Part shown: one piece after another, positions 1-21,300 of the stretch
How positions within the stretch are numbered: position 1 is the first letter of the stretch
Layout of the letters: each line of letters starts with the position of its first letter
Source: Klebsormidium nitens
Taxonomy: Eukaryota > Plantae > Klebsormidiophyceae
Direction: 5' to 3'
NCBI GenBank assembly: GCA_000708835.1
Contig: DF236954.1
Span: 174,052 to 238,051 of the forward strand
DNA length: 64,000 bases
The notes under the pieces: generated by a model
The model's input: the letters and a program-made list of their open reading frames with translations, nothing else
What the model was told of the DNA's origin: nothing
Databases searched by the model: none
Position numbers and translations under genes: made by a program

Positions 1-3000
1 ACTTCACTAACGTCACCTGCCTTCCGTTTCGCACCTTCGGCCTCGCCGTTCTCTCTTCCTTCTCCTCTCGCACGCTCTCCCTCTGCCTCCTCCTCTCCTC
101 CACCTCTCTAAGCCTCTCTTCCTCCACTCTTGCCAATGCTCTCCTCGACTCTTCGGTCGACGATGGTTTCCCTCTATGCCTCGACTGCCCATTCAACGTA
201 GCTCCCGTCAACGGAAGCCTCGGAGCCCCTTTCTCAATGTCCACAACCATCGTCGCATCCACCATCACTCCCCTTCGACCCAATTCCTCTACCTCTTCCC
301 GTGTTAAATTCGAACCCGCCGCAACTCCGAACACTTTGCCCAAATCCGGGGACTTCTCCGAGTCGGCGCACGATCCGTTCAGCATGGTGCAAGCCCCTCC
401 CGCGCACATTTTCAACCTCGACACAAACACCAGTCCCGTGTCGATCGACCTTCCCGCATCCTTCGTGTAGAATTTTCTAAGACCATGCCTGCAACCAGAG
501 TTATGCATACTCCTTTCTTCAGACAGACGGAAACAACTGTCTTCTGCAATTCACCACGATATTTAGAAATATTTGGAAAAATATTTGACAACAATTGTTC
601 TTTGCTGTTCACAACAGTTTCTTCATTATGCTTCATTACGTATCTATGTCGATAACGTTTTCTCTCATCTCAAGTCCTGACGTTACGCGGCCAATCCAAT
701 ACTTCCATGACTTGTTCACCAGTTTGCATTGGATCAGCCTCTTGCAATCCAACAATTGGTTGTTGTATCTCACGTCTCCTACTAGCCTAACGTTTTCTAC
801 GGCCTTTTCGAAAATCAGCTTTTTGCACGACCAACTAAGGTCTCTGAATCCCACTTGATACTGCCAGGTCGAGCATATGCTATCAAACAACTTGTTAACT
901 TTTCTCAACTTGTTCACTCTCTTGCCCCAATACCCCCTCTTTGCCTCGCATACAACCATCCTAAGGATCTTTTCGGTAACATCTTCCGGGAGTGGCCATC
1001 CACTGCACACACCACAAATGAAAATGCGCTGTCAGATAACTCACTTGATGAACACCAATGGTCCAGACGTGGGCGTCAACCTTTCCTTCGAAAAGTCCTT
1101 CACCCCGCACGGCTCTCTTGCCGTGACTGCTCCGACACATGCAGCTCCATCGTCCACATCCAGTCTCGCAACCACCCAATCACTCAGCGCATACCTTTCC
1201 TCTCCAACCAGTTTCAGCTCCTCCTCTCCTTTTTTTTGCCCCACCCCTTCATCCACTTCCGCTTCCTTTTCAATCTCTCCTTCTCTTTGCATCCAAGGCC
1301 CCGCTCCACCCCCTCTTCTGTCCAACTCCTGCTCCTCTTGTCTTCTCGCACTACCCTTCTTCTTCGCTTCGTCCCACAACCTCCTTTGCTCTTCCACCTC
1401 GTCCACCGTCACCAGGAAACAACTCTCGTCCTCCGGTGTTTCATTCAGATCAACTTTCCCTCCCGACCTATACTCCCATCCCCTTGGCCACTTTTCCACT
1501 CTTCTCTGATCATGCCGATGTGTGCTGCTCTCTGTAAGCTCCCCTCCTTCAACTCCACCTTTCCGAATCGATGTCGACGGTCCTCCATACCCCACTCCCA
1601 GACTCTGCCTTCGCCGCCTTTTTCTTTCCCTCTCTCCTTCCTCCTCTTCCACTTCAAGACCCTCACCGCCTCCTCTCGCTCTCTCGAAACTTCTCTTCCG
1701 AGACTCCGAACGCATTTCCAGCTCCCCCAGGCTCGGGCCTCCGCCCACCACACCCGCCCTTTCAAACTCCATCCTCTGCGCAATCTGGATCAGCGCTTGC
1801 TTCGCCTGATTCTTCACCACCTGACCCGTGCTCAAATAGCCTCCTCCTTTCCCACCCTCTCTCGTCCAGAACGCCGCGTTGTCGACTTCGGCGAGGTTCG
1901 CCGTCGGGTTAATGAACCCGGCCAGCCTCATCTCGTCCTCCATCGCCTCTCTATTCGCGGGAAGGCCCCAGAGACCGATTTGGTGTGCCCTGATTCATTT
2001 GAAAAACTATATGTCATGTGTTCAAAATTCTGCATCTACAGTTTGGGTCCACACGATATCCTAGATGAAAGTGTTGTTGTACCTGTGACAACTACAGACA
2101 ATTAGTAAGTCCCGTTGAACGGGACTATCTCTATACGCACGAACAGTCTCACATTTTCTAATGAGCTTCAAGATCGTCTATGACAATACATTACAGTATT
2201 CAATCCAGTCGATTGTTGAAATGCAAAATCAGTGTGCCACTTCGTTTCTAATTAGTCCCGTCAGACGGGACGAAATCATATTCAAATTTCGGTCCGATAT
2301 TCCATATACAAAACTTACGTCCTTACCTGTGAAACCAGAAATCAGACCAATTCTTTGCTTCTCTCCACAGTTGGCCGTCTCCGAGTTTCGCGTCGTACCA
2401 GTTCTGTGAAAGTATAAAACCTCATTCAAGAGGCCGTTCATAGCTGAAATATGTTCTACATCGTGAACCGCTGGCTCGAACTCTTAACGAGCATATGGTT
2501 CAACAAAGCAAACAAACGCACAGACATGCAAATTGTGCGTCAAGCAACACAATATATAACTCACCCTCAAAGCCTCCTTTGCCACCTCTTGCTCTTNNNN
2601 NNNNNNNNNNNNNNNNNNNNNNNNNNNNNNNNNNNNNNNNNNNNNNNNNNNNNNNNNNNNNNNNNNNNNNNNNNNNNNNNNNNNNNNNNNNNNNNNNNNN
2701 NNNNNNNNNNNNNNNNNNNNNNNNNNNNNNNNNNNNNNNNNNNNNNNNNNNNNNNNNNNNNNNNNNNNNNNNNNNNNNNNNNNNNNNNNNNNNNNNNNNN
2801 NNNNNNNNNNNNNNNNNNNNNNNNNNNNNNNNNNNNNNNNNNNNNNNNNNNNNNNNNNNNNNNNNNNNNNNNNNNNNNNNNNNNNNNNNNNNNNNNNNNN
2901 NNNNNNNNNNNAAACGGCTCGATCTTCTCTAGCTTCCCTTCCCCATTGTACCCTTTTGCACATGTCACCTTGAGGTGGTGGCAGAACTCTTTCGTGCACT

Positions 3001-5446
3001 CCGTGCTCTCCGAAGGAAGCAACGCAGAACACACTGTTAGCATCCTCTTTTCCACCGGTGAGTAGGTCGACAATCGCATAAGGTACTCCGTTGGAGAATC
3101 CGACACTTTTTGACTGTCGACGTACGCCACCTCCCCGTACAAGTCCTTTCCAGGAACGGACATCCTCATGGCTGTACCAAGCCCTGATCCCATCCCCTCA
3201 ACGCTCATCATGAATGTGCATGGTACTTGGCCGCTTCCTTTCGGAACCTGCTCCGGCAGCTGCAAACAAACACAGTATTCTGAATCATGAAGACAGACAA
3301 CATAGTAACTTTGTACCCTGCACAATATTTCTTTCTCAGAATTCATTCCCTCAACGTACAATGATGGACCCTCTCAAAAAAAGAGTGCTTACTATCGAAA
3401 GTCGTACACTGTATCACGCGCTTACCAACACGTGCTGTATAAGCTTGAGCGGCGAGCGAGCCATGAAGTCCAACTCTCCATACTTCTGGGAGAAGTCGCT
3501 CCCGGAATTTCTCCGAGCGGCTCGACCAAGCTCGAGCAACTGCCTCGCCTTTCCCATGTCCGTCAACGGCCGAATCTTCTCAATTAGCCTGCACATTGTA
3601 CACCGAAAAAGGTTCAGATTCTATGATCAAGGCTTCTAATCCAACAAGTTTGCTTCTGCAATTTCAGTATAGATATTGATTTTAGGTAAAGTCCCGTTCA
3701 ACGGGACTTCACAGCATCGATGGTTGTACAAAAAACTTACTCCGCCAAGTCTTCACCCTTCTCTACCGCAGCTTTCAACGCTTTCTCCACCTCGCCGTCC
3801 CTGAACCGTACTGCAGACTGCAAACACGGAAACAAATATTAGCATATTGAGGTCTTAGTACCTTTGATAAACAACTATTAACCTTATTTAAAAGGCAATC
3901 ATCATCTATGAAACAGAGAATTAGACAATCTTACCTTATTCGACTCTCCTCCTTCTTTCAATGCACCGACCACGAGTTTCTCAACGTCTTCACCCCTTAA
4001 CGCCTCCTCGAGCTCGTGATTGTGTTCTCCACAATGCACCACCATCATCTCCTCCTTTCCACGGACTACGATTTTCCTTGCCTTACATTCTATACCTGTA
4101 CTAACCGCGAGTTGAGGACAAAAAGCGCAGACTCTCTTCCCAAACTCGTCAACTTTCTTGAATACCCTCGTGTTTCTACGGCCTTTATCCCTAGCATACC
4201 AGCAGGAGTCATTCTGGCAAACGTAACCTCCATAACAGCCAAACGACCTAACACTTTCTATGTTCTCAGCATCAATGCTGAGTGCGTAACTAGTCTTCCA
4301 GTGACTGCCTTTGTCCTCGGCTCTGTCTATCAGAGATGCAGATAAGTCTTTCACAAAAATGCAATCTCCTTGTAAGGGATAGGGAACGTGAGCAACTACT
4401 GGAATAGAAATGTCGTCCTTCTCGTATTTCGAAATAACGTCCTTCAATGCAGACGCTCTCTTTAGACCGCGCTTCAACAAGGCCGCTCCAACAATACTAT
4501 CTCTCACCTTAATTTCATCTCCTACTCTGTACGACTGCCTTCTCTCTGCTTCCTGTCCTGTGTGACAAATTCCCGCCTCCTTATCTTTAGGGACCTTAAA
4601 CACGGATTCCACTTCTTCTTCTCTAGCCCTCGCGCTGGTTCTCGCCCGGCCGCTGCTTGCACGAGAGTCCAGCTGTAAGGTTGTCCTGCTTTTCGCACCA
4701 GTGAGGAGCGAGCCCCCGCTTTGCCTACGAGCTAGAGTGTCCAAAAGGCCCCCTTTCGACTTGACACTGACGCTTGCCGCCTGCGAGCATCTCGTTCGCC
4801 CCTGGATACCTGACGTGCCAACACTCAACCGCCTGCGCGTCGAATCTTCTAGAGAGCCGGACGAACGGTTTACAGCTCGGGCGCTGCGGATGCCCTCCGC
4901 TAAGTAGCATCCTGGGCTCAGGCAATACACGAAGCGCCCGTCGAGCCACTCCGTTGATTCGTCCGCTCTACCATTCTCCCGACGCAATGTGACACTGCCC
5001 ACAAAGTCCGCACCGAACAGTTTCACCGACAGCACATCCTCCGTGACAATCGCCGACCCCCCAGGCGGTGCAAGAACAGCGTACTCTTTGCCGTTATCAC
5101 CACGAATAACGACATCGAGCTGGCTTTCGTCGTCGCTACCCTGCTCGATGTTTGAGGTCGACAACGATGGGCGGCTCCCTTTTGTCGGGGTGATTGGGAC
5201 CGAGTCAGGAAGGTGGCTGGACGCCCGGGAACGGGGGGGGCTCGGTTTGCGACCGGGGGCTAAAGGCGTCAGGTACATCTGAGCGCCTTCGGAAGCACTC
5301 TTCCGAGCCCCTTGGACGGAAACTTCGTCCGTGGTCACGTTCCGAACGGCCAAAGAAGGCGCGCTCCTTGCAGGATTGGAACCCTTTCCCGGACTTGGGT
5401 CGCGGTTCAAGAGAGCGTTCAGATAGGAGGACGATGACGACGCCAT
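1..5446 (-). CDS. MULE-like DDE transposase, spliced, 3' end beyond the window
   Basis: Phase-consistent exons 5446-3935, 3817-3741, 3588-3426, 3259-(N gap)-2565, 2403-2327, 1989-1045, optional 1002-640, and 488-<1 (open to the window edge). WRKY/GCM-like Zn finger CYGGYVCQNDSC...CAFC...CKARK...HCGEHNH. First Asp in EVAYVDSQK, followed by RLSTYSP...ESTE...F. Second Asp expected in the N gap after IEPF. WSDFWFHR, then the catalytic-Glu motif PTANLAEVDNA. Confidence 0.8.
2597..2911. other. Assembly gap (N run) inside a transposase exon
   Basis: Run of N. Confidence 1.
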
Positions 5447-6608
5447 CTTCTGAAAGAGAGAGAGAATTCTTTGTTAGAACTCCCGTTGAACGGGAGAAAA
5501 GAAAAGTGCACCTATCGAGTTTTTCAAATACTCTTTCTACCAAGTAATGCTATCGAGATTTGATATCGGAGCTTGGAGAAAAACGAGACAGTAACATTTC
5601 AAAGATTTGCAATGGAAGGAAAGGTCCCGTTGGACGGGACTTTTTGCAACAGCACAGATAAAAAACATTCAGCGAAGCACGCTGATAACGGATCGTTTGA
5701 GACTTTGACAATAGTCCCGTTAAACGGGACTACATGCCAGTGCAGAGCACATTCAGGATTTTGTGAACAGTTATAAAAGTCCCGTTAACAAGGACCCAAA
5801 ACATATATACTAACCATTTTAGATACCCTCAAGACAAGATTTTCAATGCATAATTCCAGTTGAACGGGAGTACAAATACGTCCAGAAATGAAAATTATAT
5901 GAAAAAGGGGCGTATCAGAAGCTGACGTCAGCGTGACGTACCGGGCTGCGCGAGGACTGCCAATGTCGACAATGCAACAATGAAAATGACGAATTATGTG
6001 GATCAAGCCGTTCTATCAAGTGGCTGAAATGCGTACCTAATCAAAGTGTGTACATGGCTGCAGCCCTAAAAAAAGCAGTCATCCATCGTCCATTCCAGAG
6101 CCACGTGGCTTGCTACGCAACCAATTAGAGGGCCAGAAAGGGGATCTTATCTTGTCCGGACCAATCAGAAGGCAGAGTATCTCATGGTTGAACTACAGTC
6201 TGAAAAATCTAACATTGTAAAGTACACATTGCAGTGTAACAATATACATAATGTGTCCCAGGAGACTCTACGGCCAGCCACCTCCCGTCCGACAGGGGTC
6301 TTCCTAGGAACTCCTAGGAACTTCCTCATTTCCACGGTCGTTGGGTAGAGAGGGTCCCTTTTTGGTGCACGCGCGTTTCGAGCAGCTTGGCTGCGGTAAC
6401 GGTTGCGTTACCGCTCCCAATAATTGAATTCTGAAATTTACTGTTCTGGAGAGTCCCGTTGCACTGCGCGAGCGTGTAAAACCCTTAGCGCGGCCGCGAA
6501 GCGTTCTGAACGGTAGGTAGCTAGCTGCTGGCTTTGAAGATCATTTCACGCAACCGCCTTGGCCATTTAGTCCCGTTCAACGGGAGTTTTCTCTAAAATG
6601 GAGTTGCA
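5447..6608. promoter_or_regulatory. Divergent (bidirectional) promoter region between the transposase and cargo gene 1
   Basis: Separates head-to-head ATGs at 5446(-) and 6609(+). Contains six palindrome copies, CCAAT boxes (6121, 6161), TGACGTCA (5923) and GCACTGCGCGAGC (6461), which recurs at 17760. Confidence 0.55.
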
Positions 6609-9600
6609 ATGTCATTGAAAAGATGCCGCGATGGAACTACAGCCGGCATACTAGAGTGGTTTGCAGATTTCATATACCCAGATTTTCAACCTGGCCTTGA
6701 TGAGGCTGTTCTGTGGCTGCGCTCAAATCCAAGAGCAGAGGGTTCATTTTACGGTCTTCACCTGCTGAGGTGTGGAAAACGGTGGTTCTTCAAGCGAGAG
6801 ATCCTCCTGCAACAGCAGCTTGCTGAACTTAGTGAATCTAGTGAAAGCGAGAGTGAGACCGACAGTGAGTCTGACTCTGGATACAGCGATTGTGTTATTG
6901 TCGAACCAAACATGGAGCCCCAGGAGGAAGGGAACCCGTCCCAGCTTAGAGAAGGCACTCAGGTAAGAAACAACCTCTCCAGTTTTCCTCCCGTTCAACG
7001 GGACTTTTTGAAAGGAGGAAGTTACCTACTAGAAATTAGAGTGAGCTTACAAGTCATAGTTCTGCGCAGATGTCGGGTTACATTGTGAGGTTTCTTGTCA
7101 GGTTCTGCACAGTTTTCTCAGTCCACGAGGTAAAGTGTGTTGACAATGTCTACCGAACATGTTGACTGGTATGCAGAACTACATTAATACTGTCAATAAG
7201 ATAGACACCTGAAGACTGTAACTGGAGTATATCTGTTCCCAGAATATCTGTCAATCAGGTAACCCTGATTATGCACAGAGCTGTATGCATGGTGTGTGTG
7301 GCTGATGTTTCTGCTCGTTATGTTAGGTCCCGCTGAACGGGACTTTTCTGCAGCTGTATTTGGGAAAAGTTTGTTTGATCAGATTATGAATCGGTCTGTT
7401 GTGTGGATTTTCTCTATCTGATATCTATCGTAGTTTGTACAGTCTGTATATCTTGAAGGTATCCAGTTTTTTCTGGATAAGAGTAGAGTGCAAGCTGCGT
7501 TTCTGCATGACATTCTTCAATTGAACCAGGTGTGCCCGATTAAGTTAGTCCCGTTGAGCGGGACTAAAGCAAAACCAAATGCATCTCTATGGTGTGAACA
7601 ATAATATGTTTTGTCTAGATCAAATGACTCAAGGTAATCAGAAGGTTCCCTGGTTCAATGCATGGAGTTTTGGATTTGAAGGCCTGTCTGGTCGGACGCT
7701 TGAAGAAACTTGTTTTGAAACACAGTTTCAACACATTATTCCATTCAATTTCAGTCAACTGCTCTGCCAGGCTGCCGCAAACGAAGGAGCCACCAGTGCC
7801 CCATCAATGACTGCATCGGACAGTCAGGTAAGTTATTAAATCAACTAGACTAGACTTCCTGGACTTCCAGTCTTGTTGAATTGAAATCTCTCACAGAGTT
7901 TGAACTGGCTGAAGGTGCCACGAGTGCTTGTATGATCTGCTGATCTACTTCGTGATGAGTCGTGTCAAATGGAAAAAAGGGGTACTCTGAGAATATATGC
8001 TTCTCTTTTCATCATGATGGGGTTCAGATCTGAACAATCATGACAATTTTATCTGAACTGGGCAAGGTGTAGGTCTTCGAAACTGGAAATTCTATTCGAC
8101 AGTATGTATAGATTGAAAGCACCAATCTCAATCCATGTCTTGAACATTGCACAGGTTCCAGCTACCGCCGCTGCAAACCCTGATTTCATGGCAGCTGAGC
8201 TGGACGATGAGCCAATGAATCAAGCTGCACTGAATGACCAGGTAAGTACCTGAATGGGTTCCTCAGTGAAGTTTAGAACTGCCTCTGCCTGCTTTGAGCA
8301 TTTGCTCTTTTGAACAATCGGTTATGTCAATATAGATAGTGGTGACGTTTGGTCTGATGACATCTTTGCCTGTCCAGATTGACGACACCCTGAGAGACCT
8401 TGAACAGCTCAACGACGCTGACTTCGGAGAGCGATCAAATTGGCAGGTAAGAATCATTAACGCTGACCTTGCAACTACTGGTGTCAAGCGAATATTGAGC
8501 AAGCTCTAGCTTCTGTGTCTGTAATTGATGTCCGATTGCTATCGTTCATTCAGATTTTATGTTTTCTAATCATCCTTCATTTTCTGCAGCCCGACTCTGT
8601 TGACGAGCCGAATCCAAAACGCATCAGATTCGGTGCGCCCGGGAAGGCCCTGGGTTCAGCAACCGGCCTGGGCACAGCGGCACCTCTGAAGGTGCGTAGC
8701 TCTTTGCACGGGAAAGATCGTGAAGACCACTGTCTAACTCGGTGTGCTCGATCGCGCTCGATCGTGTTTGTTAACATCCATCAGACTAACCTGTAATCAC
8801 GAGCTGAGAGTATTGAAAGGTTAAATTTCTGGTAAGAAAAGCATGATTGTAAGCCGTGTGCATTGTAAAGATTGATGACATGATTGTTCGCTATGAACTC
8901 TTCTGCAGTGCCTTGTGAAAATTGTTGGTCCCTTATCCTGGTTCCTCACCACGCAATCATTAAAGGCTTCTCCTGTTCGTTTCGATGCAGAACGCGATGA
9001 TGAGCGTCCCCATGGACCCCTCGCTTCGGCCGACAGAACCGGAAAAAAGTGACAGTGATGAGGAGACTGAAGACGACGAGGACGAGAAGGACGACCCGAC
9101 GTTTGGTGCAGTTGTAAGCATTTATCTCAACTTACTGTTACTAATGTTTGTACGCAAANNNNNNNNNNNNNNNNNNNNNNNNNNNNNNNNNNNNNNNNNN
9201 NNNNNNNNNNNNNNNNNNNNNNNNNNNNNNNNNNNNNNNNNNNNNNNNNNNNNNNNNNNNNNNNNNNNNNNNNNNNNNNNNNNNNNNNNNNNNNNNNNNN
9301 NNNNNNNNNNNNNNNNNNNNNNNNNNNNNNNNNNNNNNNNNNNNNNNNNNNNNNNNNNNNNNNNNNNNNNNNNNNNNNNNNNNNNNNNNNNNNNNNNNNN
9401 NNNNNNNNNNNNNNNNNNNNNNNNNNNNNNNNNNNNNNNNNNNNNNNNNNNNNNNNNNNNNNNNNNNNNNNNNNNNNNNNNNNNNNNNNNNNNNNNNNNN
9501 NNNNNNNNNNNNNNNNNNNNNNNNNNNNNNNNNNNNNNNNNNNNNNNNNNNNNNNNNNNNNNNNNNNNNNNNNNNNNNNNNNNNNNNNNNNNNNNNNNNN

Positions 9601-12600
9601 NNNNNNNNNNNNNNNNNNNNNNNNNNNNNNNNNNNNNNNNNNNNNNNNNNNNNNNNNNNNNNNNNNNNNNNNNNNNNNNNNNNNNNNNNNNNNNNNNGGA
9701 CCTTAGAACATGTCAGGAACTTCTTTATAGATTGAAATGTCAAAATCTGTTTGGTACTGAACTGCTGTTGCCAACAGCTTGATTGATCTAAAATAGTATC
9801 TTGTTGTTCTTATCTTGCAGCCTGACGCCGCTGGGCTCGATCAGGTGATGGCGAAGTACTCGGGGGAGAAGAAGGGTCGAAAGAGCAAGGGGATGTCGGC
9901 TGTCGACGTTGAAAATGCGCGAGCGGCAGAGAAGGCAAGGAAGGTGACGGTGAAGGTGAACAAGATCAGCATTCTCCCCAAGCGGTTCCACAAACACCCC
10001 GACGTACACGACGGCTGCATAGAGGTCCCCCTAGCGATGTGCAAACCCGCCTCTGAGCTGCCAGTCTTGAGGCCCCCGTCTGAGCCGCTGGCTGAGAGGG
10101 TGCGCATTTCGGAGCGGGTCCCCACAAAAGCGGCTATCCGGCTGCAAACCGACGTCTTCAACAACCACGGGTACGACCCGAACAAGGGGTACTTCGTGGG
10201 GACGGCGACCGCGTTTGGAGACTGGATCAAGCCGATAACGGACGTGGACAGGGAAGCCATGTGCGAGCCTCTCCGCAAGGACCTGGAGGAATGGGAAGCC
10301 TTAGTGGTGAAGCGGGGGGTGGTGGATAACGACCCTTTCTACCAGTGGATCGGGGCGCACATCCTGTACCATTTCCTTTTCCTGGCAGACGGCAACACCA
10401 GGTGACCAGTCATGGTATAGATAACTTCAATTTCTTACTTTGAATGCAACACTTTGGTGTCTTCAGTTGGTGAAGGTCCCGTTCAATGGAACCTGGCGTG
10501 TCCAGACAGTCGTCCATGTTCTACAGAGATCGAAACTCAAACACAGAATCGAAACTGTTGGCGCCAAAGAGTTTGCAGAAGGTCCCGTTCAACGGGACCT
10601 TTGATTTCATACATGCAACTTTTCTGGCAAGGTAAATTTTTCATCAAATCCCTTCTAGACTGGTGTACAGTACTCAGGGCCACACCCTAAAACAACTCGG
10701 CCAGGCTCAAATCCCTTTGCTTGGCATCGATGCACATCGTTGCCCTTCTTGCAGCATGAAAAGGTCCCGCTAAACGGGAGTCCTTCGGCAGCAATAGACT
10801 CCCATTTGTTTGCTGTTTGCTGAAGGTTGGTTGTAGTGGACCTGTCAGGTTTAGGATGTCACGAAAACTCATGACTAAAGTGGTTCGGCAAGGTCCCGTT
10901 GAACGGGACCTTGTCTAAACAAAACGTCATCCATGTTCTGCAATAAATAAGTACTCGAACTTTGTAGTGAAACCGATGGCGCCAAAGCTTCTGCAAAAGG
11001 TTCCGTTCAACGGGACCTGTGATTTCATACATGCAACTTCTGGCAAGGCATTGTGGTCGAAAACTCCCTTCAAGACTGGTGTACAGAACTCAAGGCCACA
11101 CCCTAAAAGAACTCAGCCAGGCTCAATGCCATGTGCTTGGCATCAATGCACATCGGTGCCCTTCGTGCGGCATGAAAAGGTCCCGTTGAACGGGAGTCCT
11201 TCGGCAACTGTAGATTAACTAACAAATGAAAGGCGCCTCTGGTTCAGGTTTTGATATACATTGCAATTCATTTCAGAACTGATTTGTGGTTACAACTTCA
11301 AACAAGTTAAGGTCCCGTTGAACGGGACCTTTGCAGATGGAGCTGGAGCTTTTTTTGCTCCAGGCATAAATGGTTTGCAATGTGGTAAAACAAGGTTTCA
11401 TTCTCAATCCTCAAACGGAGTGATAGAGGTGATGAAGTATCAGTCTTACAGGGGCTGGATCGAGCCTGGATCCTTTTTGAGTGGACTTTTAAAGATTGGA
11501 AGTTCAATTAAGAAGCGGTTTAATGGTCTGACGGTCTGCCAGTTAGATAGTCCCGTTGAAAGGGACCTTTTTTCTTGGCACATCCAAGGTAATTGTCTAT
11601 CAATTGAACATTTGAATCTTCACATACAGCAACTTTATCAGTCACAACGGCTTTCAATAAACAATACCGGTTTTGTGAGTTCTTGATCCGAGGTTATCGT
11701 ATTTTGCAGAGAGGAAGGCTGGGTGGCTGCGATCGAGAAGCTTGTGGGCATCATCAAGACAGTTCCACGACCCCGGATGGTGGTGTTCGAGATAATCGAG
11801 AAGAACTGTCGCCAGATCGCTCTCCTCTCAGAAGAGATCAACAAGTCGGAGCTGGACGCAAAGGTCGTTACGACCCCGCTGCAGAAGCTGGCGTTGCTGC
11901 ACGACAAGAACAGGATGGAGACGGAGGAGGTGAAGAAGTGGATTCCAGCATCGGTACGTTATCAAAGTTAAACAAAATTCGACAGGATTGAGCCAAGATT
12001 TTGTTCCTTGATTCTTGCAGTGCGTTTGATAGAGTCGCACTGTGATGCATTTCGATCTTGGTAGCAACCTTTCTCATTATCTCGCTAGATTGAACTCGTA
12101 GACTCCTGCATCAGTGTCACTTTGAAATAGAATTTCATTCGCGAAGGTGATTCTCGCACAGATCAGAGCATATGCTAGCTGTGAAAAAGAAATCATTCTG
12201 TGCATATATCATTCTTCAAACATGATCTGCTGGAATTTGTGAACTCCAAAAGTTGTAACCCTCTTACTATCCTATTTCGCAGTCGATGGCGCTCCTGAAG
12301 GAGAAGCTGAACATCAACCTGCTGAGGAAGAAGAAGGCCGACGCCTGCCGGCACAATGTCCTCGTGTTCGTCTTCATGGAGCAGCCTCTCCTCCTGAAGA
12401 AGCTGCTCGACTTCCAGTTTGGCACGGACCTGAAAACCGGGGAGGACCTGGGCCGGTTCTGGACGGAGAAGGAGAAGAAGACGGTGATCGAGATCGAGCA
12501 GAGGAAGATGCGGAAGCAGGTCTCCGCTGCCGGATTTGAGAAGAGGGATGGAGTGGGGTTCAACTACTGGGAGGCAGACATCCGGAAGATGGTGGAGCTG

Positions 12601-13101
12601 CCGGAGCTCAGCCGAGATCTGACAAACCTGGAGATTCTCACTACCCTGAAGGAGCTGAACCTGGCAGCCTTCCTGGACGTGACAGTGCTGGGGCACCTGA
12701 AGCTGCGAAGGGCCGATCTGCAGAAGAAAGGCCTGGAGCTCACAAAGGACTCGCTCGATCCATTCTTCACGTCTGTGAAGGCTCTCCAGGTGGCGGGGGA
12801 ACTGGCAGTCGACTGGCTGGAGGAGCAGAAGCTGGTAGAGAAGAGGCCGGGGGATCGGCTGCCTGGACAGATGGGGAAGTGGAAAGGGAAGACGCTGGCA
12901 GGGCTGATGGCAAACAAGATGCCCCTCTGGGACTGGATCAAGACGCTCATCGAGGGGGATTACTCCTCCGTCTTTGAGCACCCGTTCGCGTGGATGGGGC
13001 AGAAGGGTCTGTCCTTCAAGTCCATGCTGAACAAGGAGATGAAGGATGGTGGAAAGGCCAAGTGCCTGGAGGGCATGTGGCGGCGTCTCCTGGTGCTGTG
13101 A
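6609..13101 (+). CDS. Transposon cargo gene 1, hypothetical protein (>=800 aa); acidic low-complexity N-half, NLS-like PNPKRIRF, possible degenerate Fic-like motif
   Basis: Phase-consistent GT-AG exons 6609-6962, 7771-7827, 8155-8241, 8378-8446, 8590-8691, 8991-9113, (N gap), 9821-10401, 11710-11953 and 12283-13101. The phase-2 junction ACC AG|A GAG gives ...DGNTR-EEGW. The later exons are strongly GC3-biased. Confidence 0.7.
9159..9697. other. Assembly gap (N run) in cargo gene 1
   Basis: Run of N. Confidence 1.
10561..11205 (+). repeat. ~230-bp direct repeat (10561-10790 and 10979-11205), each unit bracketed by two palindromes
   Basis: Both units read gcgccaaag..GTCCCGTTCAACGGGAC..gatttcatacatgcaact..agactggtgtacag..ggccacaccctaaaa..gcatgaaaaGGTCCCG..AACGGGAGtccttcggca. 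Confidence 0.93.
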
Positions 13102-14230
13102 GTGCAGCAAGAAAGTTTTGCCCTAATCAATTTGCCAAAAAAGTATCGGATGTTTCTGTTCTGAGTTTCCTTCTGTTTGCTGTCGCGACTTCGTAGGTAG
13201 CTTTGCAAGGCAGAAATTCCGGATCTTTTTCTCAGAGAATCGTCACACTGATAGTTGTAAACGAAACTTAGACAGTTGTGGAAAGCCCCGTCCACTTTGT
13301 AAAATTTTTGCTGAGTCAGATTCGAAAAGCGATTTTAGACTGATCTAACCTGCTGTTGAATGGTCCCGTTGAACGGGACTTTCGTACCTCACATTTTTCA
13401 GAACATAAGAGATATTTGTGCTGTATTGGACTGTGCTCGATTGCAGCTGATCTCAGTAAGTCCCGTTGAGCGGGACCTTTTCTGTTTGAACTGTACAAAA
13501 GTACATCGTTTTTGGACACAAGAAATAGTAACCTTTTACAGATTGCAAGGTTACATGTCAAAACCCGATGTGATTGTGGCTCTTCACATTTTAATGAAGG
13601 CTGGAAGTTTGAATCATTTGAGAAACGCTGCTCTGAATAGATTTAATGTCCTGCAAATTTGGAAAGGGTGCTGTAAACAGATCATTAAACTGTGTTTTGT
13701 GCTGAACTGTGTGAAGTGACATTGCGAAAGGGTCTTGCGTTATTTACACCAGGCTTGATTCGAATTATCATTGCTTTTATTTTTAATGATGTTCCTGCCA
13801 CAAACCACTTAGGATCTGTAGAAAAAGACAATGCAGAATGGTTAGTTTGAGTCCCGTTGAACGGGACCTTCTTTATCTGGATAGGATGCCTCAGAAGTAA
13901 AGCCTGGAGAGTAGCAGGTGGAAAAAACAAGACTCAATCAATGACCACTAGAGATTTGCTAGTAACGAGATTGCTAGTCAGGACCGGCACAGGCAAAAGT
14001 CGCTTTTATGCAGCCTGTTTTCAAAAGGTCCCGTTGAACGGGACCTTTCAAAAGCGCCAACTTTTGTTTGAATATCTTTTAGCGACGGTCGGGGTTCAGA
14101 AATGCACCGGGAGGCTTTGGTTATCAGTAAAGAGCCAGGTTGATTGGTGTCTAGTTCTACGTTAGTATCAAAACCATATTGAATCGCCACACGAAACCAA
14201 GTTTTAACCTTTGTTTTTTTTCAATAACAG

Positions 14231-16565
14231 GTACTTCCGAAGCTGCTTCCCCCTGCAGCTGTCTGACCTGCCCACAGACATCGAGGACAAGTCTTCCCTC
14301 AAGACGATGGCGGAGTGGGGTTACTCCGGCCTCCCCCGAGTGGTGAAAAAACACGCCATGGACTGGGCGGGTCTGGAACCGGCAGCAGGCGCAGAGCTGA
14401 AGTGGTCCGCTGACAAGCAGACCTACTTCGCGGAGTGGGAGATCAAGGCGTTGTTCGAGGGCGAGCGGCCGGGGAAGAAAAACTGGAAGGACAAAGAGGT
14501 GACGGACGGGCTGGGGAACGGGCCTCTTTCGTTGCAGGCGACGGTGGTCCTGGGGGTGGGCTGGGAAAACGATTCCGGGGGTGTTCTGCCGAAGTGCATT
14601 CCGGCAGAGAGGACGGACCCGGAGATAGAGCCGGGATTCGTGCAGTTCGTGTCACTGAGGAACCTGGCGCAGAGGGTGGGGAAGCCGGGGCCAGAGGTGA
14701 TAGGGGAGGAGAAGGAGCCTGCACCGAACGAGTCAGGTGATGAAGAAGAAGAGGTGGAGAAAGAAGAAGGGGAGGAAGAGGAAGCTGTCGAGAACGAGGT
14801 GAAAGAGTTGGAGGGAGGAAGCGGCGTTGGGTTCCTGAAATTCTTCGGGCCAAAGGGCGTGACAGTGGTGCCCAAGGTGAAAGAGATCCTGGAGGCGTTG
14901 GGTTACGCAAAGGAGCTCGGAGAGAAGAAGGAGATGGCTTTCGACGTGGAGAAAACTGGGGTGGACATGACGGTCTTTTTCGTGCGGCCAAGGTCGAAGA
15001 AGGTGGCGGAGATCGACGGCTCTGAGAAAGAGATCCGCTGGCTGCCTGCGGAGGAGTTTGTGAGCGCTGTGTCGGAGAGAATGGAGAAGGTGATGGCGAA
15101 GGGGTCAGTGGCTGTGGTGGTAGCCCCGCCGGCGCTACCGGAGGCGTGGATGGTGGGGCTAAAGAAGATGCACGCGTCGACCTGGGGCTTCAGGCTGGTG
15201 GACAAGGTGACGTTGTTGACACTGCTTATTTTATATTCTTTTTGGAGTTGGGTTTAGTAATTTTAGTGCCAACATGAATTTGAAATACATCTTTGAATAG
15301 ATGGTGAATTGGAAAGGGGAATTTGACGTGTAAGAGGTAGTGATGCGGGGATTTTCAATAAGAACTTGCAAAGCTGAAGATTTGAAATTCGTTGCACTGT
15401 AAATACATGGATCTGATGGTTTAAAAGGGACCTTGCAGGACGGCGACCCTCTGTGGCTGCACGGCCACGACGGTACGTACATGGAGGTGTCGTACTGGAC
15501 GCCGGCTGAGGCACATGGAGAGGTGAAGAAGACGGGAGGGGTTCTGCGCACACCGGAGGAGATGTGCAGCTGGCCGTTGTTCCAGAGGGGAGGAAAACTG
15601 GAGGTAAGTATAGTGGAGATATGAGTTCGTTCGATAACAGGGCTGGTTAAGGATTCGAAGCTGAGAAATAGGAGTGCGTTTGTCTGGAAAGAGGGTAATC
15701 TTATTCCGGTAGCTTTGCGGAAACTGTATGCGATGTGTCTCGTTTGAAAATTCACATCTGTTATCACGACTGTCTGTTGTGGTAGGTAGAGTTGATGTAG
15801 ATGAGCTTCATGGATGTCGAATTTTGTGGCTCAGATGCAGGCACAACAAGTTTGTGATTTGATAAGGAGATAAGAGATGTGATGTTCAAAATTCGAATGT
15901 ATATACAACGTTCTGATACGTTTCGCATAGTCACTGTTTCCATGCTGTTGCATTTCTGTCTGGTGGTTTCTGGTGCGCCGCTCCAAGATTGGAAAGGGGA
16001 AGCGAAACAACTAGCAAGGTCCCGTTGAACGGGAGTAACAGCCAGTATATCGAACCATACATGAGAAGTTGTTAACCTTCTTTTGCAGACTTACACCCTC
16101 TTGTCGGAGCACGCCTACGACCTGCCGCGCGAGTTCTGGAACGACGCGCTGGACAAGACCATAGACGCGGCGGCGTCATCGCCGTCGGCGATTGTGTTCC
16201 AGGAGGAGTACGGTGGCGCGTCGGAATACTTGTCGAGGCTGGGAGTGGATCTGCTGTCGGTGTTCTTTGCGGGGGGGAAGAAGGGAGACTTTCTGGAGAG
16301 GGAGTCAAACAAAATCACGTGGGATGAGGAGGTGGAGGTGGAAGAAGGAGGGGTGAAGGTCAAGATGACGATGGGTTACAGAGACCAAGAGGATGAAAGC
16401 GAAAATGAATCAGGAGAGGACAAGATGGAGATGGATGGAGAGGCAAAGGGCTTGGGGAAAGAAGCAAAAGTTGGAGACGAGAAGAGAGTGGCGACGGAGC
16501 TGGAAGAAGCGCCTGTGAAGCTTTCCCCGATGATGACAAGGTCAAGGAAGAAGGTATCGAAGTAG
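14231..16565 (+). CDS. Transposon cargo gene 2, hypothetical protein; possible degenerate amino-DNA-methyltransferase-like fold; 5' exon(s) unresolved
   Basis: Exons ~14231-15206, 15439-15603 and 16089-16565 join in phase 0 via AAG|GTGACG, TGCAG|GAC, GAG|GTAAGT and TGCAG|ACT. Strong GC3 bias and acidic tracts. The start codon was not determined. Confidence 0.65.
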
Positions 16566-18334
16566 ATGGGGTTGGTGTGGTGATTTGAAAGAAGGGGATT
16601 TAGAGGAAGTTGGTTGCAGGAGTTGTGAGGGAAGTTGGAAGTGGAGTTTGCGACCTTGAGAACCAGATGCACAATTGTGTAGGTGTAGATTCGAGAATGC
16701 ATTTTAGACAAAGACCTTTGAAAGGCAAATGCACGAATGTATAGGGGTAGACTCGAGTATGCATTCATGATGAAGGACTTACGAAAGTAGAGGCAACGCT
16801 GTATAGGTATAGGTTCGAGAAGCCTGAGAGATGAGGAAGTGTGTTGAAGATGAAAAATGTCTGATGAGGTGAAATGCAATTGACACTGGCATGGAATTGG
16901 ACAATCTAGAATGCATCGGCAATGGTAACATCTGTTGAAAATGCATTGTCCAATGAATGTTGTCATAGGCCTGGGTATGTGAGTGGCTTTAAAGACAAAT
17001 TGACGCATGAAAGAATGTGTTGACAATAGGTTGGACAAAGGATATATGATGTAAGACGTGTATGAATCGCGATCCTGCAGAATGTACGACTCCTTCATAA
17101 ATACCTTGTGATGCAATGCTGATGAATCATAGACCAGCACACATGAAGGTCCCGTTGAGCTGGACGTTTTGCAAGCTGTGCCTCATGCGTTCGAGACGTT
17201 TTGTGGCCCTTTCAGAGGCGAGTCGTGCAAATGTCGAAGCACAAATTGAGTCGTAAAGATCATAGGGTGTCTCATCTCGGTGGTGCAATAAATACATTGA
17301 CTCAAAAAGGAATGTCAGCGGTCTTCGTGGGTTCTTGAAGTCCCGTTCAACGGGACCATTTTTTACTCAGAGAGCTCTGCTTTTTTGGTCCCAGAGTGGA
17401 AAAAGCGTCTAAGCAGAGGATAAAATGACAATCTTCTGGTCCCGTTGGACGGGACCTTCCCCCGATACCTAGGTTTGCCCCTTCAGTAAGTAGAAAGCTG
17501 GTAGAAATGAGAATTTGAGATGCTCACTGACGTCAGCATGACGTCAGCAACTGCTTCTCTTTTATTTTATTTTTGGAGAAATTGTTTTTCGAATTTGAGG
17601 GTAAAAATAAAGAAAAAAAAAAAAACCGGCGAATTTTGCAAAAAAAAACTTTTAAAAAGATTGTAAAACTACAATATAAAACTACATACATATAGGATCT
17701 CCCTCATCTCGCCCCGCGAAGCGTACACGTCATAGGTGCTGCAAGAGAAGCTTACGTACGCACTGCGCGAGCATGAGCGTCGTCTGACTGAAAAGTCTTG
17801 ATACGGTCATTTTTCTTTGTTGACCGTACTCAAGCTGTCACTGTCAGTGACTGAGCACTGTTACTTTCAAGGAGCGTGCTGGTAGTGTGAAAGAGGGAGT
17901 AGAGGAATTCTAGTCGGCTACAGTACTTGCAACATCAGTTGAGTAGCTTGGCAAGAGTCATGGTCTTACCGTCAAGACTGTTGTCAAGACTGACAAGACT
18001 ACTACTGTAGCCCGCTGGGACGAAATCAAAAGTAAAAAAAGGGGTGCAAATCAACGCCCACTGAGTCCTTTCCAGATGGTTGTAAGTTTCAGGGGATCCA
18101 AAAAAGATATGTGATCCAAGTTGTGCAATATAGCCGGATCTACTGCCAAGTCGAAGACCAGATATAACTTCTCTTCGCCAAAACAATTGTGGTGACAAGA
18201 GGGAACTTGCTACACCTAGTACAGCTCGGTAAACAGATCCCACTTCTCTTCTAGAGAAAGATTCTGAGAAGGGCGCACGTTTGCGGCAATTCTGGACCCT
18301 CGAAGTTGCTGACCTACATCAGCAGTCGTGCAGG

Positions 18335-21300
18335 ATGGCACTGATAAGCTGTCAGCAATTTCAGGGCGTCGGTTCTTCATTGGGTCCCATGGTAAACCCT
18401 GCAGCAGATCGCTCTTCAAAGCAGACGCTTGTCAGCGACTTTTCAGGTCTTGCAGTCATCCGGAGTGGCTCCCCAACCAGAACCAGCAGCAGATGGCCTG
18501 GCGGCTCGAAAAGAAGATGTGGGCAGTCCTGGCAGGTGAGGTCCTCTTAACCCCGGATTGCATCTTACCTTGGTTTCAGTCGTCTGGCTATGCAGCGAGG
18601 AACTTGAACGGATCCTGATTCCTTGTTCCGAGTAGGGCAAAGCTTGTCGACTCTTCCAAATTATTTCGAGTGCAGTCCCCCTGTTCTCCTACCGGCTTGA
18701 CTGACACGTTTTCTACGACGAAGCAAGCTCGGTTCAAAAATTTGATCAGAAAGTCAGGTTGTTCCTGTGGTGCCCATGTTTATTATCCGCAAGAACGTTG
18801 ATACAGATGTAGTTCTGGTCCTCTTTAGCTTCCAAAATCGAGCATATGCTGCTTAGCAGGCCTGCAAACACTGATTATGTAGCGCCCATGTGAGAACTTG
18901 CAGTTGCAAAGAGCTGCTTCACTATTTCGGTAAATGATTCCGCTTGATCTAAATCATTGCGCAGGACATCACCCGGGTCCATCAAAAAACTGGCATCCGA
19001 GAAAAGGCGGTGAGAGCTCACTCAAAAGGTTAAGCTCTGTGTTGAGGTCACCCTTCATGATGTAACATGCTGCTGGTTTCCCGGGGATGAGTCCCTTGCA
19101 CTCGAAATGATTCATCAAGGACCCATGCGTGGTTTGAATCCATTGCTGGCTTGCAAAAGTCCTTCTATTTTCGTCTGCAGTCCCAGAATGTGCAGATTGA
19201 GGGGCTCGGGTCTTACGTCCCTAAGAAGACAGTGAGCGTCAGCGACAGCGTTCAGATGGCAGTCGACAGAAGGTGAGAAATTAACCGACATGTTCTTCTG
19301 TTGACAGCTTCCTTTCCAAAACGGAGCACAGTCTTTCGTTCGAGTATTTTAAGGCCCACAACTGGAAGACTTTAATCTCTTTAGGTTCTCGGAACATCAC
19401 CTGTCAAACCATCATGTTTAGCCTCCGATCTGCTTGCTTGGTTTGACAACATTTCCAGGTGCTTTCCACACATATCGAGCATCAAGGTTAGCTTTCTCGA
19501 GCTTCAAACTAGACCGCAGACCCCAGTGTCAGTGCGGCAGTGAATGCGGCGCAGAACAACCTGTGTGGCACCTGGCAAGCGACCGCAAAGTCGCGTTGCG
19601 TACTGACCAGGTCGCCAAAAGTGGAGCGCTTCTCCGACATTCTTTTGATCAGCAAGAAAGTGACGCCAAAGTTTCCCCATGCTTCGTAATCTGCGAACCA
19701 GTCGATACTCCCTTCCGCTTTTGCAGAGGCCCGGAGATAGACGAAGCGCGTCTCGCCCGTCTGCTGAGGAAGTTGTACAAGAACCTGGGCTCCGTCTCTC
19801 GGCAGTGGTCCGAAGATCCAGTTACAGATCGCCCAGTCAACTGGCTGATAGAGGTCGGTATCAGTGGATTCTTCCTCTCTTCCAGCTATGAAACTGCAGG
19901 CCAGCCAGATGGCTTAGGGAAAGTTAGCAGGAATAAACCAGCGGTCTGGGCACTTCTCAAGCGTCAGGGTAGACCTTCAGTAACAGCAGCACTCGGCTAC
20001 TGAAAGGAAAGCGCCGTCCCCCGAACAAGCAGCCCTTTGCCGTCGGGTGTTCCGCAAAATGTCAGACTGTAGTGAAAATTGAGCATACCCTATGTTTTGT
20101 TCTCATGTAAATGGTAATTCAAGTTTGATATTGAGTGTGCCCTTTAATCGTTCTGACCTTCAGCTTCCGCTGTGCAGGCGTTCTCGCAGGCGCTGGACTC
20201 TGCCAGCTGGCAGCGTACCGATGTTGACGTCATCATACACACGGGCATCGTCAGAGGCGTCATCGAACCTTCGGCCGCGGCCGTCTACTCCAACCTCCTT
20301 GGAACCTTCCGAGCCCAGTCATTTGATGTCGCCGACGCCTGCAATTCTTGAATCCTGTGAGACGCTCTTCTGCTCTCTTTTCTGGATGATCCCCCTAGCT
20401 CTTTCAACGTCGTGACATGTTTAGGGCAGTATTCACATCCCTTCCCCTCTTTTCCGCCTCCATTGGCAAGTTCGCCTGAAAGTTGCACGCCCCACCTCTT
20501 CTACTCACCATAGCTCAGACTGATGGAGAATCCTACCGTACAAATAATGTACTAAGACATTGCTGACCAGTCGCTTGCTAAAGGGAAATGTTCGGGTTCG
20601 ATCTGAGATCAATCATCCTTCTGCACAGGGGAGCGCAACTTGCGGATGCCTTGATTAAGACAGGGTCCGCCAAGAAGGTCGCGCTCATCTCCACTATTTC
20701 ATCCAACTGTCCATACCTGACGGAAAGCTACAAGGTGAGCCAAGCTTTGATGCCGGTCTTGAACATCCTTACAGAACTTTTCGTTCAATCAAAGGCCTCT
20801 TCAGATGTCAACTACGAAGACGGATCAACGTGGCATGTAGAAGTTTTCTCGACCATGTTCCACGAGTGTGCAAAATACCAGGCTCTCAGAGCGGCTGCCC
20901 AATAAACTTCTTACTGCGAAACAACCACTGCGGTGACAAAGCTGATCTTCTCCGCGCGTACTTCAGCAGCTTTCACTCCGTTCCGCAGATCACCTCGTGG
21001 GACCAGATCGGTTACAAGGTCGCCGGAATGACCGTCGGCTCAGCAGCTTCCGTCACTTTGATCGGCGGGGGCCACGAACAAGACTGGGGGCTGAAGGTCA
21101 CGCGAATCCACGACTCCTCACAAGTCGCACTCTGCATGATCAACGAGCCGAGCACTACGCGCCACCTGGGGCTGGATTCCGTCGTTCCGCAGGAGATCAA
21201 GGTGAGCGGAATTGCCAGTGCCGGAACTTGCGCGGACCGGGGCTTGGTCGCGATGCTTGAACCCACGGGACTTCTCCAGCGTCTACCAGGAGTGCTGCGG

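Follow-up and report, generated by a model that had tools for sequence, protein, structure and literature searches.

We analysed a 64,000-nucleotide stretch of the Klebsormidium nitens genome, hereafter the window (scaffold DF236954.1, positions 174,052 to 238,051; window position 1 is base 3090 of locus L121). Its first ~17.6 kb hold two divergently transcribed genes, a minus-strand Mutator-like transposase and a plus-strand accessory gene, and a 17-bp palindrome (dyad) that recurs throughout the surrounding non-coding DNA. The reading of this segment as a transposon with a motif of its own is well supported. Three assembly gaps fall at the element: one inside the transposase (gap 1), one inside the accessory gene (gap 2), and a third of 1405 N adjoining window position 1 (Table 1). 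Because this last gap abuts the window, the left end of the element is unassembled.

Scanning the window for GTCCCGTTSAACGGGAC, with up to three mismatches allowed, returned 27 matches within 2109-17455, compared to 0.14 expected by chance in shuffled sequence. Ten of the 27 are perfect. The other 46 kb of the window contain one weak match only, a two-mismatch copy lying far from the element (53077-53093; GGCCCGTTGAACGAGAC), and the 13-base core of the dyad gives the same distribution as the full motif. All 27 dyads are located outside exons (27/27), the exons of the accessory gene being mapped and those of the transposase defined by homology. Transposase introns account for three, the divergent spacer for five and the region downstream of the accessory stop codon for three; the rest occupy accessory introns 1 (three dyads), 6 (eight), 8 (four) and 10 (one). 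Introns 2-5, 7 and 9 have none, and intron 5 contains gap 2, which may hide sites. An earlier note, made from the letters of the window alone, had described ~28 palindromes confined to non-coding DNA of the element, and this picture is borne out.

Beyond ~4 bases, the flanks of the dyads are unrelated, except within a 417-bp tandem duplication in intron 6. Hence the dyads are isolated sites rather than copies of a larger repeat unit, and the duplication shows one route by which their number grows. Deviations from the consensus within the window element affect a single arm in 19 cases and both arms symmetrically in 2. The symmetry includes positions 8 and 10, which lie beside the centre and cannot pair in a hairpin, and a manual count of single-arm changes (5 wobble versus 8 mismatches) revealed no preference for G-U wobble. 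These features favour reading of the dyad on duplex DNA by a dimeric protein over reading of a hairpin. Covariation of the bases flanking the dyads was not significant (P = 0.35-0.71). Maintenance of a perfect dyad by compensatory changes, with co-varying flanks, is not borne out within this element, given the latter value and the 19:2 count.

Relatives of the element include a diverged paralogue in K. nitens, on an 11.9-kb scaffold with an annotated gene of 1060 amino acids (aa) (L122; DF238116.1), and loci from five other public datasets: L123 and L128 (SRR20627847), L124 with L126 (a 17.9-kb ENA metagenome contig), L125 (a second ENA assembly), L127, L129 and L130 (SRR23617210), and L131 (ERR14374064). 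The three loci with enough sequence to judge (L122, L124/L126 and L127) keep the divergent gene pair, and in each of them the dyad frame, GTNCCGYYSRRCGGNAC, accompanies the pair. The frame is present in all related loci but L131, whose 947 bases have none. Its density is 1.2-2.8 per kb, with the exception of L129 (one dyad, 0.47 per kb), versus 0.04 per kb elsewhere in the window. Homology-supported coding segments make up 37-62% of five related loci, yet contain none of their 61 dyads.

The half-site of the dyad varies by lineage. It is GTCCCGTT in the window element and L122, GT(G/T)CCG(T/C)(T/C) in the 17.9-kb metagenome contig, and GTGCCGCC in L125 and L130, with TT changed to CC at positions 7-8. 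Position 3 is C in 45 of 46 arms in the window versus 0 of 44 arms in the metagenome contig (Fisher P ~9e-25). Three lineages coexist in a single sample, SRR23617210 (L127, L129 and L130). At the divergence seen in this family, intron sequence is otherwise unalignable yet the dyad is kept; the site is therefore subject to selection, changing along with the element. Lineage-specific half-sites argue for a dimeric binding protein encoded by the element itself.

The transposase gene begins with a 514-aa open reading frame (ORF) that ends in a WRKY/GCM1-type zinc finger. By language-model feature similarity alone, the finger matches GCM, FLYWCH, FAR1 and DBD_Tnp_Mut clusters (score 0.96, 193 shared features), and it is conserved across the transposon family. 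Small exons bearing canonical splice sites follow. In translated comparisons, window positions 170-5209 are collinear with L122 97-5183, at 50-65% amino-acid identity. The window supplies the region of the first catalytic Asp; in L122, the counterpart of this exon continues with SAD...CEWH after YVDSQ, and the rest of the DDE core is visible there and not in the window. The L122 core scores 0.95 against MULE/ZSWIM1-3 RNase H clusters, and its ten best matches that have a family share one clan. The best explanation is a predicted transposase of ~1060 aa, in which a WRKY/GCM1-type zinc finger precedes a MULE DDE core and a long C-terminal extension. Pfam searches of the raw ORFs and of the L122 and L124 exons returned nothing meaningful, and PF10551 gave no match at E 10, so the Mutator assignment rests on motifs and feature similarity. 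A homologous-protein search with the 514-aa exon returned only itself, and there is no exact-protein match on record. The MULE-like DDE transposase proposed in the earlier note is supported with a caveat: the window shows the zinc finger and first-Asp region, and the remainder of the core is seen in L122 only.

Gap 1 lies inside this core. Its two flanks are both collinear with L122, in the same order and on the same strand by translated comparison. Downstream of the gap, the sequence reads EQEVAKEALR and then GTGAGT, matching ENEREDAKRKLR and then a donor site in L122, which places the gap within one exon. Homologous reading frames on the two sides are offset by one base, which makes the nominal 315 N inexact; the real gap length is not divisible by three. 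Comparison with L122 suggests that ~72 codons are missing.

Three further observations concern the transposase gene. The last exon leaves the left end of the window without a stop codon and enters the 1405-N gap, and consequently the public annotation joins this transposase-like gene to the upstream vanadium haloperoxidase gene (1496 aa, DUF6851 and VCPO_2nd) beyond the gap (L121 1-8535; in the window, up to 5446). The fusion is probably an annotation artefact. The C-terminal exon at 639-1031 (minus strand; L122 528-1040, minus strand) has a weak F-box-like match (E 0.01, below the Pfam cut-off) and an LPEDV...IL motif. Window positions 1-2000, which encode the E/G/R-rich C-terminal extension, show a strong GC skew of -0.44, with purine-rich, low-complexity coding sequence on the minus strand.

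On the other side of the spacer is a single accessory gene, KFL_000050260, annotated with 11 exons and a product of 1219 aa (P0001); the two large orphan multi-exon genes of the earlier note are not confirmed. A HMMER search with its 349-aa exon found five proteins, including P0001, whereas a homologous-protein search with P0001 returned self only. Language-model features of residues 150-440 match DUF3723 (score 0.94) and two ParB_N clusters (0.90 and 0.88). When family profiles were searched against PDB, Helicobacter pylori Spo0J, a ParB (4UMK), was the best match of one profile and the only match of the other, at E 0.08, in an alignment that spans box II, box III and the helix-turn-helix region. 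In six family members, the exon preceding the helix-turn-helix-like segment closes with (D/N)G(N/A)(T/H)R (variants DGNTR, NGNHR and DGAHR), which we take to be the DGxHR-type signature of ParB/Srx domains. Motif, PDB match and feature matches agree, none of them significant alone, and give a weak indication that the accessory protein is ParB-like. The 1.3-kb intron 6, with its eight dyads, splits the ParB/Srx-like from the helix-turn-helix-like segment.

Other searches with this protein added little. No useful match came from a PDB profile search with just the N-terminal half, and tblastn of the ParB-like segment found nothing among plasmids; nor did a regular-expression search of the fetched bacterial loci turn up a real ParB. 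The C-terminal domain, common to four other proteins of the family (P0002-P0005; Table 1), had no match in a profile search of PDB. By eye only, an APPxxP...EEYGGA(S/T) stretch could be a degenerate pair of beta-class methyltransferase motifs IV and I; no tool supports this assignment. In the metagenome relative, an extra 270-aa ORF follows the accessory gene (L124 12587-13399); it has the look of an OTU-type cysteine protease by eye, with no Pfam match at E 10.

Contigs from a DNA run (X1) and a bisulfite-like run (X6) were compared over 12201-18200. Word depth in the X1 contigs is 41.8-44.6 within the element, compared to 22 in a contig starting at 17633. Two-variant bubbles are also present, with depths of 20 and 27.6 at 14012-14129 and of 15 and 19.1 at 17559-17643. 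The doubled depth and the bubbles indicate that there are about two near-identical copies of the element, with a right boundary near 17590-17643. Dyads reach to within ~150-200 bp of this boundary.

A second sequence, TGACGTCA, occurs as pairs of boxes with a spacing of 11-15 bp. The window has two such boxes ~80 bp inside the right boundary (17528-17546) and, in the divergent promoter, one box with a near-copy beside it (5923-5940). Pairs also occur in the L124/L126 contig, in joined orientation, at 428-446, 7965-7984 and 16912-16931, and in L125 at 3667-3689. In the 17.9-kb relative, a block of ~45 bp round the paired boxes is inverted near both ends, and a pair is present in the promoter as well. 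The paired boxes may be end sequences or promoters.

Assembled RNA from 22 runs with the same species label contains essentially none of the element's words, and this copy of the element appears silent. X6, a public run of the same species, resembles a bisulfite library, in that C>T dominates the differences and many short contigs are 90-99% alike. Its summed depth is 88-398 over 12201-17600 and zero over the flank at 17801-18200. Since reads that had been fully converted would not pass the 90% likeness cut-off, the cytosines of the element would be mostly unconverted. These data, from one run, suggest dense cytosine methylation that ends at the right boundary. The C>T contexts listed (10 CG, 1 CHG and 12 CHH) are mixed, and no methylation context can be named from them. 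The apparent silence and methylation of the element neither support nor refute an anti-silencing role.

How might these parts work together? We propose that the dyad is bound by a dimer of an element-encoded protein. The likeliest candidate is the accessory protein, via its putative ParB/Srx-like and helix-turn-helix module. Given a dyad density of 1.2-2.8 per kb across promoter, long introns and 3' region, such a protein would load at many spread sites onto the DNA of its own family only. Once loaded, it could act in cis on chromatin, in self-recognition or anti-silencing, by analogy with VANC or ParB-parS. Taken jointly, that the element is a giant autonomous Mutator-superfamily DNA transposon of at least 17.6 kb, with its left end inside the assembly gap, and that one of its own proteins, probably the accessory protein, acts through the dyads as a dimer, is in our judgement about an even call. 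Within this proposal, we regard support for which protein binds as moderate. A more elaborate version is a ParB/parS-like self-recognition module, in which a dimer sits on the dyads, the half-site co-evolves with the protein, and each lineage addresses its own copies, which are protected or reactivated against cytosine methylation. Such a module would be a second independent anti-silencing system beside VANC; we regard this version as doubtful.

Several observations weigh against the proposal of a dimeric, element-encoded dyad binder on a Mutator transposon. Inverted repeats between 1-2600 and 16500-20000 were not found, the left end being in a gap, and neither were terminal inverted repeats in the 17.9-kb metagenome contig or a target-site duplication. 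Of the copies, terminal inverted repeats and target-site duplications sought in the earlier note, about two copies and the L122 paralogue were found. Pfam (P0001-P0009, E 1), PHROGs and NCBIfam assign the accessory protein to no family, its PDB match to ParB is at E 0.08, and no enzymatic domain was detected in it by Pfam or by the PDB profile of its C-terminal domain. Both AlphaFold models, built on shallow alignments, are unusable (pLDDT 38, and 44 for the C-terminal domain). The element appears silent and methylated, with no activity visible. Finally, the zinc finger of the transposase is an equally plausible binder.

This last point amounts to a serious alternative, although as a complete account we consider it unlikely: the dyads would be sites for the transposase, bound via its WRKY/GCM1-type finger for assembly of the transposition complex or for promoter autoregulation, and the accessory protein would do something else. 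TnpA sites of En/Spm and the AAACGG repeats of Ac are familiar examples of many short protein-binding words inside a DNA transposon, and GCM-type fingers recognise CCCG-containing sites, which the invariant CCG/CGG core of the dyad resembles. The finger is well supported and conserved in the family, five dyads lie in the divergent promoter, and others approach the right boundary. But sites of this kind normally concentrate at the ends, within a few hundred bases in En/Spm and Ac, whereas the dyads fill internal introns over 15 kb and form their densest clusters there. Moreover, WRKY/GCM1 fingers are usually monomeric on asymmetric sites, and in the metagenome relative the candidates for inverted end repeats are the paired TGACGTCA boxes rather than dyads. 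An improbable alternative is that the palindromes act as hairpins, either as intronic RNA stem-loops in both pre-mRNAs (affecting splicing or small-RNA production) or as DNA cruciforms. Each copy does fold, with a stem of 8-11 bp, a loop of 3 nt and an energy of -12.5 to -17.5 kcal/mol (z -3.4 to -5.5), and a palindrome can fold in transcripts of either strand. Yet positions 8 and 10, which would be loop, also take part in the symmetry, and neither the wobble count nor the flank covariation described above bespeaks pairing; in addition, several copies lie in the untranscribed promoter and 3' region, and an Rfam search found no matching family.

Two other explanations look to the host. A host factor, for example a methylation-targeting or insulator protein, could read the dyads, marking the element for the host; this would suit its apparently dense methylation and lack of transcription, as well as the CpG within CCG in every half-site. 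We think it quite improbable, as a harmful motif should be lost rather than conserved and amplified across diverged lineages, and the different half-sites in one sample (L127, L129 and L130) better fit a specificity encoded by the element. Least probable of the explanations considered is an immobile, duplicated host gene pair, in which a domesticated transposase and its partner gene share a regulatory motif. There are only about two copies, and the missing terminal inverted repeats and target-site duplication would be explained. However, single samples and genomes contain several diverged lineages side by side, the repeat breaks off sharply at ~17.6 kb, catalytic-core motifs are intact in the L122 paralogue, and assembly gaps cluster in the element, as expected of a repeat.

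To our knowledge, VANC of Arabidopsis is the only transposon protein tested so far that recognises motifs in its own non-coding DNA. It is the tested analogue of the dimeric binder proposed here (PMC10398659), and Petroll et al. also remark on VANDAL elements (10.1101/2025.02.11.637652, section 8). VANDAL21 and the Klebsormidium element are both members of the Mutator superfamily with an accessory gene, in both of which short motifs accumulate in non-coding DNA, partly by tandem duplication, and differ between related families. Unlike the short asymmetric word of VANDAL21, the motif here is a 17-bp dyad. No Pfam match at E 1 links VANC to the accessory protein, a comparison made at the level of families.

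ParB-like proteins have recently been described on giant transposons of other algae. According to Petroll et al., Plavaka elements of a red alga carry PAG3, with a ParB-like N-terminus and a 2OG oxygenase, and tandem inverted-repeat arrays beside the gene; PAG3 is an accessory protein of Plavaka/EnSpm elements in Bostrychia, and homologues are noted on giant Mutator elements of Chondrus (10.1101/2025.02.11.637652). Sola1-1_Ec32 of Ectocarpus, 21.5 kb long, encodes a 1104-aa protein with ParB-like and DNA methyltransferase parts, opposite to its transposase, and Dinatale et al. see in such proteins a possible new class, able to bind and modify the transposon that encodes them (PMC12477816). The Klebsormidium element is like these systems in being a giant DNA transposon of an alga, with internal inverted repeats proposed as sites for its own protein and weak ParB-like signals in the accessory protein; in common with Sola1-1_Ec32, its large accessory gene runs opposite to the transposase. 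It differs in that single 17-bp dyads are dispersed in introns, promoter and 3' region, not arrayed in tandem beside the gene, and in that neither a 2OG-oxygenase nor a methyltransferase domain is detectable (Pfam, PDB profile), homology to ParB not being established. Accessory proteins that resemble ParB and come with arrays of inverted repeats are thus a recent proposal for transposons of red and brown algae; the Klebsormidium family fits this idea and differs in its superfamily (Mutator), its streptophyte host, its dispersed intronic dyads and its lack of a recognisable enzyme domain. The earlier note's suggestion of a VANDAL/VANC-like element stands as to the giant Mutator element, accessory gene, motif in its own non-coding DNA and lineage-specific variants, and the claim of a wholly independent new system is tempered.

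The resemblance to bacterial ParB-parS likewise goes only so far. There too, a palindromic site of similar size is present in many copies on the replicon that encodes the protein, and the accessory protein has a candidate ParB/Srx N-domain followed by a helix-turn-helix. By contrast, the element has two genes only, with no ParA partner, (D/N)GN(T/H)R stands in place of the GERRxRA CTP-binding box, and the setting is nuclear and eukaryotic, with introns and a protein about four times larger. Another lead comes from fungi, where DUF3723 is an accessory gene of giant Starship elements, with unknown function (PMC9156397). DUF3723 is the best language-model feature match of accessory residues 150-440, and like the gene studied here it rides on giant transposons, but Pfam PF12520 gives no match at E 1 and the 165 shared features fall short of the guideline of 170, making this a lead only. 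If a ParB/parS-like module were confirmed, it might relate to the unexplained DUF3723 genes of Starships.

As a compact test system, the Klebsormidium family combines a culturable streptophyte host with one defined 17-bp dyad, one candidate binder and the transposase as the alternative. Between its natural lineages, the half-sites vary at defined positions, and these differences predict specificity residues and allow swap experiments. The family also illustrates how putative binding sites can make up the bulk of the long introns of a transposon gene.

Table 1. Features of the element in window coordinates, except where L121 or L122 is named
Feature	Position	Strand	Remarks
Transposase exon 1	3935-5446	-	514-aa ORF, ATG at 5446; 52-58% identity to L122
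WRKY/GCM1-type zinc finger	~3946-4190	-	end of exon 1; CX4C...HXH
Transposase core exon (predicted)	2912-3253	-	YVDSQ...LLPSEST, first-Asp region; runs into gap 1; 64% identity to L122 2735-3106
Downstream transposase exons	~2326-2421, 1044-1994, 639-1031, 2-550	-	within 2-2421; collinear with L122 97-2308
Divergent promoter/spacer	5447-6609	.	five dyads and TGACGTCA box at 5923; short block conserved with L122 at 5905-5958
Accessory gene KFL_000050260 (P0001)	6610-16565	+	1219 aa as annotated, 11 exons; no Pfam family
Accessory exons 6 and 7	9824-11953	+	candidate ParB/Srx-like segment (DGNTR at 10388-10402) and helix-turn-helix-like segment
Accessory exon 9	14235-15206	+	conserved C-terminal domain common to P0002-P0005, E 1e-25 to 1e-40
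Dyads (27)	2109..17455	.	starts 2109, 2255, 3691, 5480, 5624, 5714, 5854, 6570, 6988, 7327, 7548, 10476, 10582, 10764, 10893, 11000, 11180, 11312, 11550, 13363, 13460, 13851, 14028, 16019, 17149, 17340, 17439
417-bp tandem duplication	10466-11214	+	intron 6; three dyads per unit; 72-84% identity
Right end region	17528-17643	.	paired TGACGTCA boxes (17528, 17539), then A-rich tract where depth halves (~17590-17643)
Gap 1	2597-2911	.	inside transposase core exon; hides second Asp and CxWH motif
Gap 2	9159-9697	.	inside annotated intron 5 of accessory gene
Left gap	L121 1685-3089		1405 N; directly before window position 1

Exact copies of the dyad also turned up, several to a contig, in other metagenome sequences (L006, L116, L033 and others). 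These contigs show no protein similarity to the window element and carry arrays of similar hairpin repeats that we took to be bacterial, and the likeness was set aside as chance or convergence. In the short contigs L006, L116, L033, L076, L083 and L103, the hairpin repeats have the common core GTCCCG(T/C)T(G/C)A(A/G)CGGGAC, and L033 contains, by eye, a bacterial MlaE-type permease gene, the reason for taking the arrays to be bacterial.

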